The notes under the pieces: generated by a model
Seen by the model: only the letters and a program-made list of their open reading frames with translations
Database searches by the model: none
Told to the model about the DNA's origin: nothing
Position numbers and translations under genes: made by a program
In this document: positions 3,838 to 64,000 of the stretch, in pieces
Layout: every line of letters starts with the position of its first letter
Position numbering within the stretch: the stretch's first letter is position 1
DNA from: Camelus ferus
Lineage: Eukaryota
Assembly (NCBI RefSeq): GCF_009834535.1
Contig: NC_045720.1
Span: 992,001 to 1,056,000 of the forward strand
Direction: 5' to 3'
Length of the DNA: 64,000 nucleotides

Positions 3838-5247
3838 TTACGAGTCCGTGTGCTCCCCCTGACCTACATACTTCTTACCCAAATGTACAGGGGTCTTACT
3901 CAAGGGAAGTCCCTCCTGGTGAACATCTTGGTTACTTTTAAAGTTTGGAGCTGAGCTGAACTCTTTCCCATACTGGCTGCATTCATAGAGTTTCTCTTCA
4001 GTGTGAATCTTCTGGTGCTGAAGGAAGTTTGACCTCTGAATAAAGCCTTTCCCACAATAACTGCACACGTAGGGCTTTTCTCCAGTGTGGACGATCTGAT
4101 GCAGCAGGAGCTTGGAGCTCTGAATGAACGCCTTCCCGCAGTCCTTGCACTCGAAGGGCCTGTGCCCCGCGTGGATCTTCTGGTGCTCTGTGAGGTGCGC
4201 CTTCTGGAGGAAAGCCTTCCCACACTCCTTGCACTCGTACACGCGCTCCCCGGTGTGGACTTTCTGGTGTCGGATGAGGTACGAGCTCAGAAAGAAGGCC
4301 TTCCCGCACTCACTGCACTGGAAGAGCTTCTGGCCAGTGTGGATGCGCTGGTGCTGGGTGAAGTTGGACGTCTGGCTGAAGCGCTTCCCGCACTGGCTGC
4401 AGACGTACGGCCGCTCCCCAGTGTGGGTGCGCTGGTGCTGAACGAGCTTGGAGCTGCGGATGAAGGCCTTCCCGCACTCGCTGCACTCGAAGGGCCGCTC
4501 CCCGGTGTGAATGCGCTGGTGCTCCACGAGGTCCGAGCGGTGGCGGAAAGCCTTCCCGCACTCCTGGCACTCGTACTGCCGCACCTCCGTGTGGGTCTGG
4601 TAGTGCCGGACCAGGCTGGAGCTGCGGATGAAGGCCTTCCCACACTCGTTGCACTCGTAGGGCCGCTCGCCTGTGTGAATCCTCTGATGTCGAATGAGCA
4701 GCGAGCTCTGGCTGAAGCCCTTCCCGCACTCTTTGCATTCAAAAGGCCTCTCGCGGGTGTGAACCCGCTGGTGCCGGACCAGGTCTGCGCTGTGACAGAA
4801 ACCCTTCCCACACTGGGTGCACCTGAACGCCTTTTCTCCCGCGTGCGTTTTCTGGTGCTCCCCAAGGCCCGCGAGGTGGACGAAGTCCTCCCCACACACG
4901 TCGCACACGTAGAGCCTCCCTCCAGTGTGAGCTCGCCGGTGCTCGGCAAGGCGGGCGCTCTGGCCAAACCCCTCCCCGTGTGTGTCGCACCTGTGCGGGT
5001 GGGCCTCCCCTTCTATAAGCTCTCTCTGAAGTATGAGGAGGTTGGAGCTCAGGACCGGGCTCCCCCCTGACCTACCACCCACCAGGGCTGCTTCTCCTGC
5101 TTGGATCTTCCAGTGGGTGACCGTCACTTGCTTGAAACCTGCCTCCTGGGAGGCACAGCTCCGCAGGCTCTGCCCTTCCAGGTTTCCCAACAGCCCCCTC
5201 AACCTGAGTTCGGGGGCCCCCCCAGATGCAGGGGCAGCAAGCTCCAT
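3838..5247 (-). CDS. ZNF623: Zinc finger protein 623 (KRAB-less C2H2), single coding exon, 469 aa from the ATG at 5247
   Basis: [11 protein letters not shown]...WKIQAGE...LQRELIEGE followed by 11 intact C2H2 fingers matching ZNF623 as recalled (e.g. [34 protein letters not shown]). The ORF-track start at 5250 is a GTG. Splice acceptor cctttctcttatttcag gives an exon start at 5336. Synteny with GFUS-PYCR3-TIGD5-EEF1D. Confidence 0.93.
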
Positions 5248-16900: not shown

Positions 16901-19700
16901 CTCAAGGGGAATTTCACCTGAGAGTCCGCGTGGTGAAAACAGTTACATGGGGACATCTTCATCACGCACCTTTGATTTTGCCACAGGCCACACGAGTGGT
17001 GAATGTCCGGCAATATCGATTGCCCGGAGGCTGTGAGGAAATAGGACAGACTATTCTAAAGCCTGAGGAAGCCGGTATAATTTGGGCTACGCATAGCCCA
17101 TATAATTCTCCAGTGTGGCCAGTGTGGAAGCCAGATGTCTCCTGGAGGATGACAATGGACATTTGTTGTGTTGCCACAGGGATATCTGCACAGCCGCACA
17201 CTGTGCCATGGCCTGGTGGCCCAGGACCTGGCTACATGGAGCAAACCAGATACCGTTCGCTTGTTCCATTATATTGATGACATCATGCTAGCCTCTGATT
17301 CTCTTTCAGATTTGGAAACCAGTGCCACAGCGCTGCGAGAAGCCCTGGCGGGCTGGGGGTGGGCCACGAACAAGGACAAAATGCGAGGACCTGGACATTC
17401 TGTCAAATTCTTGGGTGTTGTTTGGTCGGGTAAGACAAAAGTGCTGCCTGAAGCAGTAATAGACAAAATCCAGGCATATTCCCGCCCTGAAACAGTTAAA
17501 CAGTTACAGACTTATTTAGGTCTTCTGGGATACTGGCAGGTGTTTATTCCTCATTTGGCCCAAATAGCCAAACCCCTGTATAAACTGATTAAAAAGGGAG
17601 AAATCTGAAACTGACCTGATGAGACCAAATATGCATTTGTTGGAAGTAAGAGGAAGGTGACCCAAGCGCAAGCACTGTGCACTGCAGACCCAGACCTACT
17701 TTCTGGCTGGCAGTCCGTGTGGACGATGATGGATATGGCTGGGGCTTATGGCAGAAACATGGGCAGCGGAAAGTGCCCATAGGATTCTGGTCTCAGTTAT
17801 GGAAAGGGGCTGAATGTCGTTTTTCTTTGATAGAGAAACAATTGCTAGCAACTTATGCATCCTTGATTGCCACTGAACCCCTGATGGGGAGGCAAGAGGT
17901 CCAAGTGCAGACCACATGCCCTATTGCAGGATGGGTACAGGCATGGGCAAAGCAACCCCGATCGGGAACTGCCCAAACCCCAACTCTGACGAAGTGAGGT
18001 GCTTATTTGGAACAGAGAGCCCAGTACACCGCTAGCACCTTGGCTGCAGAGTTGCAGCAGGTGTTAGGGCCTGTGAGACTTGTTGCCCCTGATGTACAGA
18101 CGCTCCCACAAGGGGTGGACCCTGTGCCCAGTCCCTTTCGTGAAGGGAAAGGGCCAACCCCAGGAAATGCTAAGTATACAGATAGATCTTGTAAGGGCAG
18201 TCTGCCCACTTGGGTTGCAGTAGCTCTGCACCCTGCCACTGCAGCCTTCTGGTATGAGACTGGAGAAGGCCAGTCCAGCCAATGGCCTGAGTTACGGGCA
18301 GTATGGATGGTGTTGATGAATGAGCCTAGCCCCTTGCAGATTTGCACGGATAGTTGGGCTGTATATCGAGGCCTTACATTGTGGATACCCCAATGGGCCC
18401 TGCAAGACTGGATGATTTGGCACCGGCCCCTATGGGGACAACAGATGTGGAAACAGTTATGGGACAAAGGCCAAGAAGGCCAATATACTGTTTACCACGT
18501 ACCAGGGCACCGCCCAGCCCTGGCACCGGGCAATGATGCTGCTGACACGCTAGCCCAACTTCGCCCTGTAGAGGCCATGGTCCCAGGACCCAACATAGGT
18601 CCCTGGTTTCATAAGAAACTTGGTCATGTTGGCTCATACACAATGAGGCAGGCAGCTGACCAGTGGGGCCTGCACCTGAGCCACAGTGAAGCCAAAGATG
18701 CCGTGCGGCAGTGTCCATGGTGTGCTAAGCACCACCCGCACCAGCGGCGATGGCCCCAACAGACGAGGAAGATTGCACGGGGAATTCAGCCATTGCAAGT
18801 ATGGCAAATAGATTACGTGGGCCCCTTTGCTCCGAGTACGGGCTTGCGGTACCTGCTGACAGCGGTAGACACCACTGCTGGCCTAGGTTTTGCTCACCAT
18901 GTGCTCCGAGCTACACAAGAGGCTACTATTAGAGCACTGGAAGTTTTACGGGCCTTCTATGGGACTCCCTTAGAAATACAAAGTGATAGAGGGACCCCTT
19001 TCACTGCCCAACAGGCCCAGGAGTGGGCCAAAGAAAATGACATTAACTGGGTATTGCATGTGCCTTACTGTCCTCAAGCAGCAGGAATGATTGAACGGTA
19101 CAATGGCCTATTAAAGGAGAAACTGAGGGCTCTCAAACCACAATGGTGAGGCTGGAACAGTGTCGTGCCGCAGGCAGTACGTCTTTTGAATGAACAACCT
19201 CGCCATACAGGTATGAGCCCACTGGAAAAGTTATTGCAAGGGACTATTCAGAGGCTCAGAGTTGGGCCCATGCAGAATACCTCTGAAGTCTCAGTAATGG
19301 GGCGTTAATATTACGCGCCCCCAGGGTGTTGAACTCGGGACAACAGGACACCTGGACATGGAAGAATCAGGTCCAGACTGAAGGCCCCTGGCTAGCCCTT
19401 TTGGCACCATGGGGCGATGGGCTAGAGAAAGCCCTGCAGGTAACCCCATGAGTGGGGGAATAGCCTTTTGATGTGCAGGTTACTCTAGGGAAAACAGGAG
19501 TGTCCCCACTTAAAGGAGCAGAAGCCCTACGGCTTTGGGCAATTCCACTGATAGCTCCTGAAGCTCTCCCAGAGTGTAACCAACCTAGTGTGGGCGGGTT
19601 GGTGTGGTACCACCACCCAGGGCGAACAGCCCTTCCTGCCACTGTACTCTCACAGGATGAGAAACTGCTTGCATCCTCCCAGAAGGGAGAGATTTGCCAA
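16900..19700 (+). pseudogene. ERV pol remnant (RT, RNase H, integrase)
   Basis: YNSPVWPV, LPQGYLHS and YIDD (RT); YTD/EL/CTDS/GNDAAD (RNase H); HHCC and D-D(35)E (integrase, within the 18007-19149 open frame); stops and frameshifts elsewhere. Confidence 0.92.
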
Positions 19701-49435: not shown

Positions 49436-52250
<2,815 letters not shown>

Positions 52251-57442: not shown

Positions 57443-57813
57443 CCTTGGAGGTTCATAGGAAAGGCTTCTGTAGCCAAAGATGTTTGGGAAGTGTTCCCCA
57501 GACCCCTCTGGAGAGCCTGGGTGCCCTGCCCGTTGGATCAGAAAAGACAAGCTTTGCAGTTGGGAGGATGCATGCACACACGGCACACACAGCACACGCA
57601 TGTGTACGTGTGTGTCAGTCGCTTCACGGGGTTGCCTGTGCACTCCACTCCGGGTCTTTGCCTGTTGCCTCACAGAACCCCCAGGCACCTCCGCAGCGGG
57701 CGTCCCCCGCAGCCCCGCCAGTCAGGCTGAGCAGGGGGGTGGGGGCGCCGTCTGCAGACGGCTCGCGGTGTTGCAACTGCCTTCTCCTGCTTGCTTTTTA
57801 ACGCTGCGTGAAG

Positions 57814-58884
57814 ATGAGGAGCGGGAAGGCCTCCTGTGCCCTGGAGACCGTCTGGGAGGACAAGCAGAAGTATGAGGAAGCCGAGGGGCCCTTCCACGAG
57901 CACGAGGCTGTGCGAGCCACCGCCCCCGCCACCGCCCAGCAGCTCCTGGCCGCAGCCCCGGCTGTGAACGGGCCAGGCGGGGAGGATGTGGAGGAGGCAG
58001 ACGCCCCCGACGGCAGCAGGAGCGACCGCGGGAAGAGCCCCAACGGGAAGAAGCCCCTGCAGAAGAAGAGGAAGCGCTCCCCGAAGGGCTGGCTCAGCCA
58101 GGCGGACCTGGCCCTCGTGGGCCTCTCAGCCGACCACGTCTGGCTGGACAAGCCACTTTTTGACCAGGCAGAGAGTTCCTACCACCAGAGGCTGGCAGAC
58201 GTGGCTGCCCAGGCCCCCTGGGGTCCCTGCACCCATGGAAGCCAGGTTGCCTGCCACCACGTGACCTGGGGCATCTGGGTCAACAAGTCTTCCTTTGACC
58301 AGGCAGAGCGGGCGTTCGTGGAATGGTCTCAGGCATTGCTGCTGGCTGTAGAGGGGGGCGGCCAGCAGGCAGCTCCCGACACAGGCCAGCAGGCAGCCGC
58401 CCCGGACCTGCACCTCATCCGCCAGCCCAGCCCTCCGGCCAACAACCAGCCCCCACTGGGCAGCCTGCAGGCGCTCGTGCAGGGGGTGTGGCTCGAGAAG
58501 CCGCGGTACGACGCAGCCGAGAGGGGCTTCTACGAGGCCATGTTTGACGGCCACCCTCCTGGGAAGGTGCGCCTGCGGGAGCGGGCCGGCCAGGCTGAGG
58601 GCGCCAGGCGGGGCCGCAAAGACCGGCGGGGCCGCAGCGCAGTGGGAGGCAAGCGGCTGGAGCAGCGACGGGCCAACGGGGAGGCCCCCTCCAGCCCTGC
58701 CCTACTGGTACTTCCTGCACAAGGATGCCGAGGCCCCCTGGCTCAGCAAGCCCACCTACGACAGCGCTGAGTGCCGCCACCATGCTGCTGAGGCCCTGCG
58801 CACGGCCTGGCGCCTCGAAGCCGCATCCCTGGCCCGCCAACCCAGCGCCTGGTCTGGCCCTTCCGTGTCCAGCCTGAGATCCAA
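57814..58884 (+). CDS. EEF1D: EEF1D long-isoform (eEF1BdeltaL) exon, frameshifted near 58693
   Basis: MRSGKASCALETVWEDK..., NLS KKRKR. The homologous C-terminal part (ALPYWYFLHKDAEAPWLSKP...VSSLRS) lies in the +1 frame. The exon is 1071 nt where 1070 is needed to join the next exon in frame. Confidence 0.88.
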
Positions 58885-60616
58885 GTAGGAGAAACATGTT
58901 GGGTGGATGCCTAGGCTTCTGGGCTGAGGCCAGCATGGTCCCCTTCCTACCTCCACCCCGGCGGGCCTCTTCCTGATTCCTGGACCCCACTGAGTTGGAT
59001 GCTGGAGCGGGTTGGGCAGGGGTGGCTCTCTCCTCCTGGGGCATTGCGGTCTCCAGGATCACCCTTGGGGGTCACTGAGTTCTGGTCACCCCCACCGAGT
59101 TGGTGGAGGGAAGGGCTGAGTTTGTCCTGGGCAGGGTTTCCCTTTTGGCCTGGCAACTATAGGCCTGGCAGAGGGAGCAATGAAGCCTGGCCCGAGCCTC
59201 ACTGGGCCTGCCTGGGAATTCTGTCTACCCTGTAACCACCTCTGAGGGGAGGTGGGCATCTCGGGTGCACCAGCACATGCCAGTGGCCTGAGTCTGGAGG
59301 ACACCCACTGACGAGGCCAACTGGCCTTCAGCCTGTGTACTCAGGGGTCTTGGAGGAGAGGGGAGGGGTGGGCAAGGCCAGTGTCTGGCTGTGGAAGGGG
59401 CCCCTTAGCCAGCTGGGCTCAGGGGAGAGGACTGGATTGGAGGCGCAGCAGTGGGGAGAGAGCCTGTGGTGCAGGCGGGGTCAGCAGGGAGTTAGGCCTC
59501 CCTGGGCGTGACTCCCAGCAAAAGCCCCTTTGCTCCTCAGTGGGGAGCTGGTTTGAGAGGATCTGGGCCCTGGTGTGAGGGGCCAGGACATGGGGGGTTG
59601 GGGGTGTTCCCTGTTGGGAGTATGGGGGCAGATCATGGAACTAAAGCTGGATTCATGGTGGCGCCTCATGGGGGCGGGGCACAGAGGGGAGCTCTTGTCA
59701 CCAAGGGGCACTTGGCGAGGTCCGGTGATGGCCTGGGGTCCTCGGCACAGAGAGCTGGTGGGATTGGGTCCTTTTCTGTCACACTCAGTGAGGGACAGGA
59801 CAGTCCTGTGGCATCAGGGTTGTCGTGAAGGGCCAGAGGGAGAAGAGGATGGACCCTGTGCTTGGGTCTGGGGCAGCTCCCCTGTCTTGCTGCGACGTGC
59901 CAGTGCTCCAGTTTGCCAAAACAGATGGTGGCTGCGCCCGCCTCTCAGGCCAGAGTTCGCCAGCCATTCTCAGACTTGCTGGTCTCAGGATGCCAGAGCT
60001 TTCTACCATGGATTTCTACCATGTTGGTGATAAAACACAGGAGGTTATTTGTTGGAAAATAATAAGGTCGTTATTTGTTAACATATTTCTGCAGAAATAG
60101 TTTCCTTGTAACAAAAAGATCTAGGAAATAGGGTGGCCTTGTTTTACATTTTTGCAAATTTCTTGTGTCTGGCTTAATAGAAGGCAGCTGGATCCCTGCA
60201 CCTGCTTGTGCATTCAGTCTGCTGGTGTACGTTGTCTGATCGACAAATTCAGCCTTGAACAAATGTGTGATTGGAAAAGGGAGGATCTTGGGAACCCCTG
60301 GAGGTTCATGGCTGTACTTTGAGAGCTGCTGGCCTTGGGGATAGGCCCGGGGACCATGGGCCTTAGAACGGAAGGAAGTCCAAGGTGGGGGGCAGGGGTA
60401 GGGGCTTATGGGCTCACTGTGGTCTGTGCCAGGAACCGCTGGTGCTCTGCTCGGGGCCTGGAGCCCTTGTCACCCAAGGATGGGACAGCCTGCCTGGCAC
60501 CCTTGAGGTCTGGGCTGTCGGAAAGGGCGCTCGTGCAGGCCCGCCCTGGGGCCTGCGAGGAAGCACCCTCTCCCAGCCAGGCTGTCTTAGTCTCTCCTCC
60601 CCTTCCTGACAGGAAA

Positions 60617-61123
60617 ATGGCCACAAACTTCCTTGTGCACGAGAAGATCTGGTTCGACAAGTTCAAGTACGACGATGCAGAAAGGAGGTTCTACGAGCAG
60701 ATGAACGGGCCCGTGGCCGGCTCCTCACGCCAGGTAGGGACTCTGCGCAGCCGCTGCTGGCGGGCCGGAGGAGGGCGGTCTGGCTGGTTCCCGGGGAGCT
60801 GGAGCTGCCCTCATCTCTGCGCAGGGCGCTCCCAGGGGCCCACGGGACCCGGCCCGGCCGGGCCTGCAGAGCCCGCGCCGCGGGCCCCGTCTTTGCGGCC
60901 CAGGACTCTGTTCTCGTCTGTCCTCTGGCCCCTTGAGCGCATCCTGTGCAGCAGTTCCCTGCTCTCCTCACATGAGTCTGGGTTTTTTTTGAGTTTTTTT
61001 TAAATTTAAAAAAGAAAAAGAGAGACTGGTGTTTTTCTGCACTGTCTGCAGGAGAACGGCGCCAGTGTGATCCTCCGTGACATCGCGAGAGCCAGAGAAA
61101 ACATCCAGAAGTCCCTCGCTGGG
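60617..61123 (+). CDS. EEF1D: Elongation factor 1-delta, short-isoform N-terminal exons (partial; the gene continues beyond the window)
   Basis: Exon 60613-60733 (ATG at 60617; [39 protein letters not shown]) and exon 61052-61123 ([24 protein letters not shown]). Confidence 0.96.
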
Positions 61124-62124
61124 GTGCGTACCGCAGGCCGCCGCCCCCCCTCCCCGCGCCCCTGCTCCTCCCCCGCGCTGCTGACTACTTTGGCCTCTTG
61201 GAGCAGTTAGCGTAGGGTGTGCAGGGCTGTGTTCCCACACCGCCAGAGAAGATGTTCTTCCTCTTGTGTCCTTGCTGAGCTGGCTGGCGGTCACCTGGGA
61301 TGCCCCACCTTGCCTTGGCCACTCCTGTGGGGCCAGTGTGGGCCCCCTCATCCTGCAGGGTGCACCCCAAGGCACAGACCCGGAGACCTCTTGCTTTGGG
61401 CTTGCTCTCCCGGCTCAGGAACGCAGGAGAGGGTGGCACATGCCATGGTTCAGAGAGTTGCCCCCGTTCCTTGGCCCGTGGCTTCTGACGTCAGTTTCTG
61501 CCACATTTCTGGCTCTTATGTGGACCTTTGTGATGACCCTGGCCTCCCCGGTGGACACCGGGTGATCTCCCTACGCCCAGAGCCTCAGCTTCATCACATC
61601 TGCAAAGTCCCTTTTGCCACGAGGTCACCTTTTTACAGGGTTCGGGGATTGGTATGGGGCCAGGTTTTAGAACCTTCTGCTGGCCACAGCTGGTTCAGGA
61701 GGTCCTGGCTGTAGGTTGGGCAGACCTGGGTGAGTGTCCCCAGGAAGTGGTGCCCAGCAGACCGTGCTCTGTGCTTGGCTCCTGCCTTGTCTTCCATCCA
61801 GCAGCCCCAAGTCCCACCCGCCACCCTCTGCTTTGCTCAACACAGTTCAGGCCAGGCAGACGTGGGATCGAGGTGGCACAAGGTCTTTGCACTCAGGCCA
61901 GGTGCGTCAGGCTCCTGTGCCCAGGAGGCCAGTGCTGGGGGCTCAGCAACTCTGGGGGCTGTGGCCCTGGAGCTTCCTGGGCTGCGGACCTCTTCCCCCA
62001 CCGGGCCTTGGGGCCTTGGCCACTGGGGTCAGTGGCAGGGTCTTGGTCTTTGGGGGAAGCACGTGGGTGCTTGCTTGGGCCTGGGGGCAGGTCTGCTTGG
62101 GCTGCTGTGTGAAGCCCCGCGGAC

Positions 62125-62420
62125 CAGGTGGCAGGAGGAACAGACACTTACCTTCTCGTGATGTGGAGGGTCAGCTTCCGAGATGAAGGTGTGCGGGGGT
62201 TGGTGCCTTCCAAGGCCTCTCTCCTTGGCGTGTAGAAGGCTGTTTTCCTCCTGTGTCTCTGTCACATCTGTGTCCACATTTTTTCTTATGACGACACCAG
62301 TTACGGGATTAGGACCACTTAACGACTCCTCATGATTAATTACTGTTTCCGAGTAAGCCCCCACTCTGAGGCCCTAGTGGTGGGGCCCCCACGTGAACTT
62401 CAGGGGAGCATCATTCAGCT
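62125..62420. mobile_element. MLT1 (ERVL-MaLR) LTR fragment
   Basis: ggcctctctccttggcgtgtag, cttatgacgacaccagtt, gattaggaccac and catcattcagc resemble MLT1. Confidence 0.65.
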
Positions 62421-63934
62421 GCCAAGGAACCCAGGAGGGATGCTGCGGCCCAGCCCCGTGCTTGGACTTGGGTGGGGTGGGGCTCAGCACCTGCCGTCTC
62501 CGGAGGTTCCCACAAACTGCGAGGTGACAGGCACAGGGCTAGAGGCAGGAGTGGAGGGTCCTGGATTCAAAACCTTAGTGTGGGTCTGCCCTTGAGGCTG
62601 CCAGGTGGCTGCCTATTGTATCATGGTCTGCGACTGGACCGGGTGGCCTGGGCCCGCCTCACTGAGCTGCCAGACTTTCTGCCCCGAGTAGCAGTGGGCA
62701 GGGTGGCCCTCAGGCACAGAAGCCATGCAGTGACTACGGGCTTGTGGGCTGGGCAGTGGTGACCCAGTGGCCCCCAGTCCGGTCTCTGCCCCGCCACTTC
62801 CTCTTGGCCTTGCAGCAGGTGGGGCCTTGCCCGGAGCCTGCATCCTCAACCGTCGGTTCCCACTCAGTGCTGTCACCAGGGCTGTGTTGGGAGGTCCCCG
62901 GGGCTGGGCCGACATGCCGGGCAGCAGGCTCCAGCCTGCCGCCAGACCCTGGTGCATTTGCTTGGCAGGTGAGCCTGCTGAGAGGGGTCCGGGCCGGAGC
63001 GTGCAGGCTGGTGGAGCAGGAAGGGTGGTCAGGGCCTTGCAGGGAACAGGTGGTTCTGGATTTCATCCCTGTGCGGTGGGGCTGCTGGAGGGTTTTGGTG
63101 GGAGTGGTATTGGGAGCTGAGTGCTGTGGGAAGCAGGCTGGAGAGGCTGGGTGCTCTGTGGCAGTGGCGAGGGCGGTCAACTGGCAGGTGGATGCTGTTG
63201 GCATTTGCTAACCAGAGTAGGAGGTTATGGGGACAAGTTGGGGATGGACATGTAGGTTGATCTAAAAGGAGGGGAATGGAGTGAGCAGAGCCCACCCCGG
63301 TCCTAGGGCCTGGTCAGCACTGCTTCCCCAGCAGCACGGCGCCACTTGGCCAGCTCTCACGAGATTTCGATGCAGTAGGAGCTGGTGGGTCACAGGAGAC
63401 AGTGTCGGCCTAGTACCGCCCCAGGTCCGTGGGCAGGGAGCCAGGTGCTGTCAGTGTGTCCTCTGTTGGCAGTGGCCTGGGGGTGTGCAGATCAGAGGAG
63501 GAGGCCACATGGCTTGCTCTGTGGCTGCCTGGTGGGTGGGCGGGCCCCAGGCTCAAGGTCTTCACTGTCGTTGGACACTGGAGAAGGGCAGTGGCCATGG
63601 GAAAGGGCCCAGTGACCATGCTTTGTCGTTGGAGCCGTTCCACTGCAGTGTGGTGGTGCTGAGTGGCCTGCTTGTAGGCCCCAGGGGGTAATTTGAGCCA
63701 TGACACCTGGGGGGTGAGCTCCCTGGGCCCCGCTGTTGGGTCAGATGACAGGGCTCCCAGTCAGGGAGGAACCAGAGGAGGCTGGTGGCCAGGCCAGGGT
63801 CCCTGGTCACTCGGAGCTTTTGAGGGAGGCAGGGTGTGGCGCTGGCTGCTGCAAGGTGGCTGCCCCCTGCTCTGGCATGCTCCTTCCTCCTGCTCCCAGT
63901 GGGCCCCTCAACTGCCATCCCCTCCTGTTTCCAG

Positions 63935-63991
63935 CTCAAGGCTGTGCTGCCCAGTCCTCATGAGGCTCTGGGCCAGGCTGACCCAAGGGCT
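63935..63991 (+). pseudogene. EEF1D: Relict 57-nt in-frame EEF1D cassette exon (LKAVLPSPHEALGQADPRA) with a non-functional TT donor
   Basis: Good acceptor cctcctgtttccag; 19 open codons; followed by ttaagt instead of gtaagt. Confidence 0.55.
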
Positions 63992-64000
63992 TTAAGTCCT

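Follow-up and report, generated by a model that had tools for sequence, protein, structure and literature searches.

The long isoform of elongation factor 1-delta, eEF1BdeltaL, is specific to brain and testis and responds to heat shock (PMC6176097, PMC4346937), and variants of its gene, EEF1D, are among those found in neurodevelopmental disorders (PMC10767685, PMC13685516). These reports agree with what an earlier note on the DNA considered here had stated about the isoform, yet they have no bearing on whether one particular base, an A at position 58693, is real. The DNA is a stretch of 64,000 nucleotides (the window) of the Camelus ferus assembly BCGSAC_Cfer_1.0 (GCA_009834535.1, record CM020792.1; PMC8069558, PMC7924851), in which the A, at position 1050693 of the record, shifts the reading frame of the exon that encodes the N-terminal extension of eEF1BdeltaL. 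From this frameshift the earlier note had concluded that the long isoform is disabled, and it had offered two readings, a lineage- or individual-specific loss of a heat-stress regulator or an assembly error. If the frameshift were real, a desert-adapted mammal would be without a heat-shock-responsive transcription regulator, which would be a striking claim. The comparison with other camels indicates that the frameshift exists as text but almost certainly not as biology.

Reading frames of the EEF1D long exon

The identity of the exon is well supported by homology. The 318-amino-acid open reading frame that runs through the shift matches mammalian EEF1D long-exon reading frames and annotated elongation factor 1-delta proteins with E-values of about 1e-141, and the extension beginning MRSGKAS is orthologous to the annotated EEF1D long isoforms, which bears out the gene and exon named in the earlier note. 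A search against Pfam assigned no curated domain to this exon. The features of the exon and the sites at which the C. ferus gene differs from its nearest relative are collected in Table 1.

Table 1. Features of the EEF1D long exon and differences between the C. ferus and C. bactrianus genes (window coordinates unless stated otherwise)
Feature	Position	Strand	Basis or location
EEF1D long-isoform (eEF1BdeltaL) exon, coding part, ATG to exon end	57814..58884	+	orthologues named elongation factor 1-delta
Piece 1, 293 codons in the start frame (MRSGKAS...ANGEAPS)	57814..58692	+	identical to residues 1-293 of P0147, P0220 and P0223
Extra A, CTCC[A]GCCC, private to the C. ferus assembly	58693..58693	+	absent from L006, L007, L008 and L009-L012
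Piece 2, conserved tail, +1 frame (ALPYWYFLHKDAEAPWLSKP...SSLRS plus AA of a split codon)	58694..58884	+	identical to residues 294-356 of P0147, P0220 and P0223
TGA that ends the shifted start frame, with 114 nt of exon left	58768..58770	+	sequence
GT splice donor of the long exon (CCAA/gtagga)	58885..58886	+	junction inferred from camel protein ...SLRSKKMATNF and the next exon
Next EEF1D exon, with canonical ATG 60617-60619	60613..60733	+	tblastn and sequence
C. ferus vs C. bactrianus, difference 1: +A	58693		coding, long exon
C. ferus vs C. bactrianus, difference 2: T vs G	60818		intron
C. ferus vs C. bactrianus, difference 3: +G	L005 position 7347		constitutive coding exon

From its ATG the start frame reads MRSGKASCALETVWEDK...RRANGEAPS and continues past the extra base as SPALLVLPAQGCRGPLAQQAHLRQR (SPALLVLPAQG...) until it meets the TGA, exactly as the earlier note had described. 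The +1 frame that opens at 58694 reads ALPYWYFLHKDAEAPWLSKPTYDSAECRHHAAEALRTAWRLEAASLARQPSAWSGPSVSSLRS; it begins ALPYWYFLHKDAEAPWLSKPTYDSAECRHHAAEAL, ends ...SSLRS and leaves AA ahead of the donor at 58884/58885. In an alignment with the orthologous exons of Nannospalax and Mastomys and with an exon reading frame from ENA, piece 1 ends GEAPS and piece 2 begins ALPYWYF with 0 residues missing, and because the two pieces abut without the loss of a residue, exactly one base is surplus.

Splicing phase leads to the same count. The next exon, bounded by an acceptor AG at 60611-60612 and a donor GT at 60734-60735, opens G AAA ATG and thus requires 3n+2 bases from the long-exon ATG. This phase is given by the 1070 nt found in three other camel assemblies but not by the 1071 nt of the window, the one-base discrepancy already pointed out in the earlier note; the +1 tail frame, ending AA, joins the G AAA ATG at 60613, as in the camel junction protein SLRS-K-KMATNF. 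Only in the C. ferus assembly does the start frame miss the required phase by one base. Across this junction (window 60605-60620) camelids carry ...SLRS-K-KMATNF where rodents and guinea-pig carry ...SLRP-NR-KMATNF, and a NAGNAG-like displacement of the acceptor by 3 nt from one lineage to another is suggested by this difference of a single residue.

The exon in other camels and in alpaca

Profile searches revealed long isoforms of 638 amino acids in C. dromedarius (P0147, XP_010997807.2) and in alpaca (P0160; Vicugna pacos XP_072805987.1). The cluster that holds the camel proteins lists a further one of 638 amino acids, P0220, under the name 'LOW QUALITY PROTEIN: elongation factor 1-delta [Camelus ferus]' (XP_032323564.1), together with an older C. 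bactrianus model and P0223, a 357-amino-acid exon reading frame encoded by 10 read-assembled Logan contigs. The sequence of P0220 is identical to that of C. bactrianus XP_010959454.3, and the NCBI product for C. ferus is pieces 1 and 2 of the window joined without a gap; the C. ferus case is already flagged in public annotation. In P0147, P0220 and P0223 alike the two pieces lie exactly end to end, and an intact 638-amino-acid long isoform is predicted for the dromedary (two assemblies), the domestic Bactrian camel and alpaca.

The frameshifted product itself, by contrast, left no trace. An exact look-up of the 318-amino-acid sequence across the assemblies and read sets of the collection returned no record. 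Protein searches with the same reading frame gave no match above 78% identity and none from the same species, and a 100-amino-acid piece across the break gave a sole match, at 50% identity and from another species; the camel exon reading frames sit in a 90% cluster whose 638-amino-acid representative fell outside the length ranges of both searches, and were reached only through a profile with a longer first sequence and through the cluster listing. The shifted tail was covered by none of the matches of either query. The sole match of the shorter query (P0101) was set aside as uninformative, since this contig was assembled from reads of another species and changes frame several times.

We compared the EEF1D locus, with 300-base flanks, among C. 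ferus (L005), C. bactrianus (L006, from GCA_048773025.1, in which the C. bactrianus protein XP_010959454.3 is encoded) and two C. dromedarius assemblies, mCamDro1.pat (L007, GCA_036321535.1) and CamDro3 (L008, GCA_000803125.3) (PMC13603154). L005, taken from CM020792.1, is identical to window positions 57514-64000. Where the window reads GGCCCCCTCCAGCCCTG, the other three assemblies and Logan contigs from four sequencing runs (L009-L012) read GGCCCCCTCCGCCCTG, that is, GGCCCCCTCC-GCCCTG without the A. These four contigs belong to the 10 that encode the intact 357-amino-acid exon product. At positions 57837 and 58155 three of them (L009, L011 and L012) carry Bactrian-type alleles and L010 carries the dromedary type; the Bactrian-type contigs may come from wild or domestic camel, as no site of the exon tells C. 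ferus from C. bactrianus. One uninterrupted frame from ATG to donor is thus broken at 58693 in the C. ferus assembly and intact in L006-L013. Independent assemblies without the extra base were, by the earlier note, grounds for refuting its reading, and the three compared here do lack the base that it had placed at about 58693; this comparison locates it as the A.

Over the 8.17-kb gene, the four-way alignment shows C. ferus and C. bactrianus to differ at three sites only (Table 1), and within the long exon their DNA is identical apart from the extra A. The frameshift is no chance pattern but one base within DNA that otherwise matches completely. An inactivating change of the kind expected for a unitary pseudogene or for exon loss is not found in any of the three other Camelus assemblies, in alpaca or in the fetched read-based contigs; the A is private to one assembly whose flanks match the nearest relative.

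The exon also carries the mark of selection in camelids. Camel and alpaca differ at 29-31 nucleotides and 14 amino acids in its 357 codons (dN 0.018, dS 0.060-0.068, dN/dS 0.26-0.29) and by 0 indels in 1071 nt, while the adjacent 1.6 kb of intron shows 4.1% mismatches and 52 gap columns. All 14 of the protein differences between camel and alpaca fall in the long exon and 0 in the canonical 281 residues. Relaxed constraint, under which dN/dS would lie near 1 and indels accumulate, is not what the camelid exon displays; with a dN/dS of 0.26-0.29 and no indels it is maintained, fast-evolving yet under purifying selection. Compared with rodents, primates and other mammals, camel and alpaca both lack seven residues through an in-frame deletion (window 58230-58245, AAQ/APWGPC), and both have AEGPFHEHEA in place of the AERRFYEHEA of orthologues.

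A probable assembly error and its alternatives

The C. ferus gene carries a second private insertion, a G at about 1056860 in CM020792.1 (860 bases after the window ends), which is absent from C. bactrianus and from both dromedary assemblies. The exon that it interrupts encodes ...QYAEKK/KKPALV... ([T/A] then KKPALVAKSSILLDVKP) and is included in all EEF1D isoforms; after the G the C. ferus frame reads ...QYAEKKDQKACPGGQVLHPPG, so that every isoform is shifted before the EF1_GNE domain. Were the G real, the exchange domain would be lost from a housekeeping factor, and it cannot plausibly be real biology. The two private insertions fully account for the length of the gene, 7567 nt in C. ferus against 7565 nt in C. 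bactrianus, and for the low-quality label. Private insertions outnumber private substitutions in the gene by 2:1, and both insertions fall in coding exons; two insertions against one substitution, with one of the insertions in an indispensable domain, are the pattern that consensus errors leave and evolution does not.

A wider sample was taken near ZNF623, for which the window holds a single-exon reading frame (3841-5247, minus strand) with ten C2H2 fingers that four NCBI assemblies encode without difference; over 2410 bases of this locus the window matches GCA_009834535.1 alone at 100% identity. Over 21.4 kb around it, C. ferus has 1 private one-base insertion outside homopolymers and 4 private substitutions, whereas C. 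bactrianus has only differences in homopolymer length and 7 substitutions. These counts point in the same direction as those from EEF1D, though they are small; in all, about 29.6 kb of C. ferus sequence contains 3 private insertions and 5 private substitutions. The ZNF623-region insertion (CACA[C]TAGT, L014, alignment column 16192) lies beyond the window start in non-coding DNA. In the same comparison mCamDro1.pat has 1 private one-base indel and 1 private substitution and CamDro3 (L016) has 31 private substitutions and 14 private one-base indels, of which 9 add a base and 5 remove one; CamDro3 also seems to bear many small consensus errors.

Two further observations concern the window between ZNF623 and EEF1D. 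A reading frame of 380 amino acids (18007-19146, plus strand) with RNase H and integrase core domains is a pol remnant of a retroviral or LTR element, situated between the ZNF623-like reading frame and a KRAB-ZNF region. A run of 300 N (50937-51236) lies inside overlapping long reading frames (49436-51799) where TIGD5 would be expected; TIGD5 was not used as an anchor, and the fetched loci, with flanks that were small or anchored far off, end short of this stretch.

An A private to one assembly, accompanied by a second insertion that breaks an indispensable exon, makes it almost certain that an assembly error, and not gene loss, is the explanation. We put the probability that the extra A is an insertion error of the assembly, and not the loss of a heat-stress regulator, at about 0.9. 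The base at 58693 would then be a single-base error in the BCGSAC_Cfer_1.0 consensus rather than a camel mutation; the true camel exon would measure 1070 nt from ATG to end, encode an intact N-terminal extension of 357 residues and join the canonical EEF1D exons in phase to yield the 638-amino-acid eEF1BdeltaL. A possible cause would be, for example, residual insertion errors of long reads that polishing did not remove from a region with about 70% G+C. Two points speak against such an error. The inserted A lies outside a homopolymer and is thus not the commonest kind of polishing error, and both of the 2 private indels in the gene fall within the 23% that is coding, which would happen with a probability of about 0.05 if they were placed at random, unless errors cluster in G+C-rich exons.

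It is very unlikely that the sequenced animal, a wild Bactrian camel, instead carries the insertion as a genuine allele, on one chromosome or on both, that is either its own alone or rare in C. ferus. Such an allele would amount to a natural loss of function confined to the long isoform, with the short translation factor spared. The base does stand in the deposited sequence, it does not change the length of a homopolymer, and such an allele could be tolerated, as mice deprived of the long isoform only are viable (PMC6176097). A real allele sits badly, however, with the implausible second insertion of the same kind in a constitutive EEF1D exon of the same assembly, and with a ratio of private indels to substitutions (2:1 in the gene, 3:5 over the larger sample) far above that of normal variation; NCBI, moreover, flags the product as of low quality, and the shifted product occurs in no read-based contig. 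That the A is real in the sequenced wild camel and merely happens to stand next to an unrelated assembly error in EEF1D would be a coincidence of very low probability. A real A would constitute a natural knockout of the heat-shock-responsive, brain- and testis-enriched EEF1D long isoform in a desert mammal.

A loss of eEF1BdeltaL throughout a lineage, whether C. ferus or camels generally, and tied to adaptation to heat or desert, could draw on the frameshift itself and on the camelid-specific changes in the exon, namely the seven-residue deletion and the AEGPFHEHEA motif. The deletion, though, preserves the frame and occurs in alpaca as well, the 638-amino-acid isoform is intact in both dromedary assemblies, in domestic Bactrian camel and in alpaca, the exons of C. 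ferus and C. bactrianus are otherwise identical, and the camel-alpaca comparison yields the low dN/dS and the absence of indels given above. We therefore consider such a loss extremely improbable; of the readings offered by the earlier note, the assembly error is the one favoured by the three Camelus assemblies and the read-based contigs without the A. It is scarcely conceivable that a new acceptor created by the extra A (ccccctccAG/CC) is joined to a donor further 5' in the exon and rescues the frame in the transcript. The pyrimidine-rich string followed by AG which the earlier note had remarked on is indeed present at 58684-58693 (ccccctccag), but its use would delete conserved residues, and the site is moot if, as is most likely, the base is not real. 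The claim that the long isoform is disabled gives way before a private A, a private companion insertion, the low-quality flag and the purifying selection on the exon.

A loss of the long isoform should not be claimed for this camel, given an exon that is intact and constrained in camelids and a break that is almost certainly an artefact of one assembly. Single-base frameshifts in BCGSAC_Cfer_1.0, notably one-base insertions in G+C-rich exons, call for a comparison of Camelus assemblies before losses are inferred from them.

Comparison with known systems

The locus resembles the mammalian eEF1BdeltaL in its place downstream of ZNF623 and ahead of the canonical-ATG exon, as well as in its splice phase. 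It departs from it in that the frame of the exon is split by a single extra A, in one assembly only. Described examples of the isoform are XP_010997807.2 of C. dromedarius and XP_072805987.1 of alpaca, and both pieces of the window exon are 100% identical to the dromedary protein of 638 amino acids.

As a gene model, it falls in with the 'LOW QUALITY PROTEIN' entries of NCBI, in which the pipeline corrects frameshifts suspected to be genome errors. XP_032323564.1 is so labelled, it equals the C. bactrianus protein, and the span of its gene is two bases longer, which fits two private insertions. If the A were real, the exon would be comparable to the loss-of-function alleles of the long exon in human and mouse, with a premature stop, likely nonsense-mediated decay and an effect on the long isoform only. 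Those alleles, unlike the one in the window, which rests on the consensus of a single assembly, have been verified and have phenotypes.
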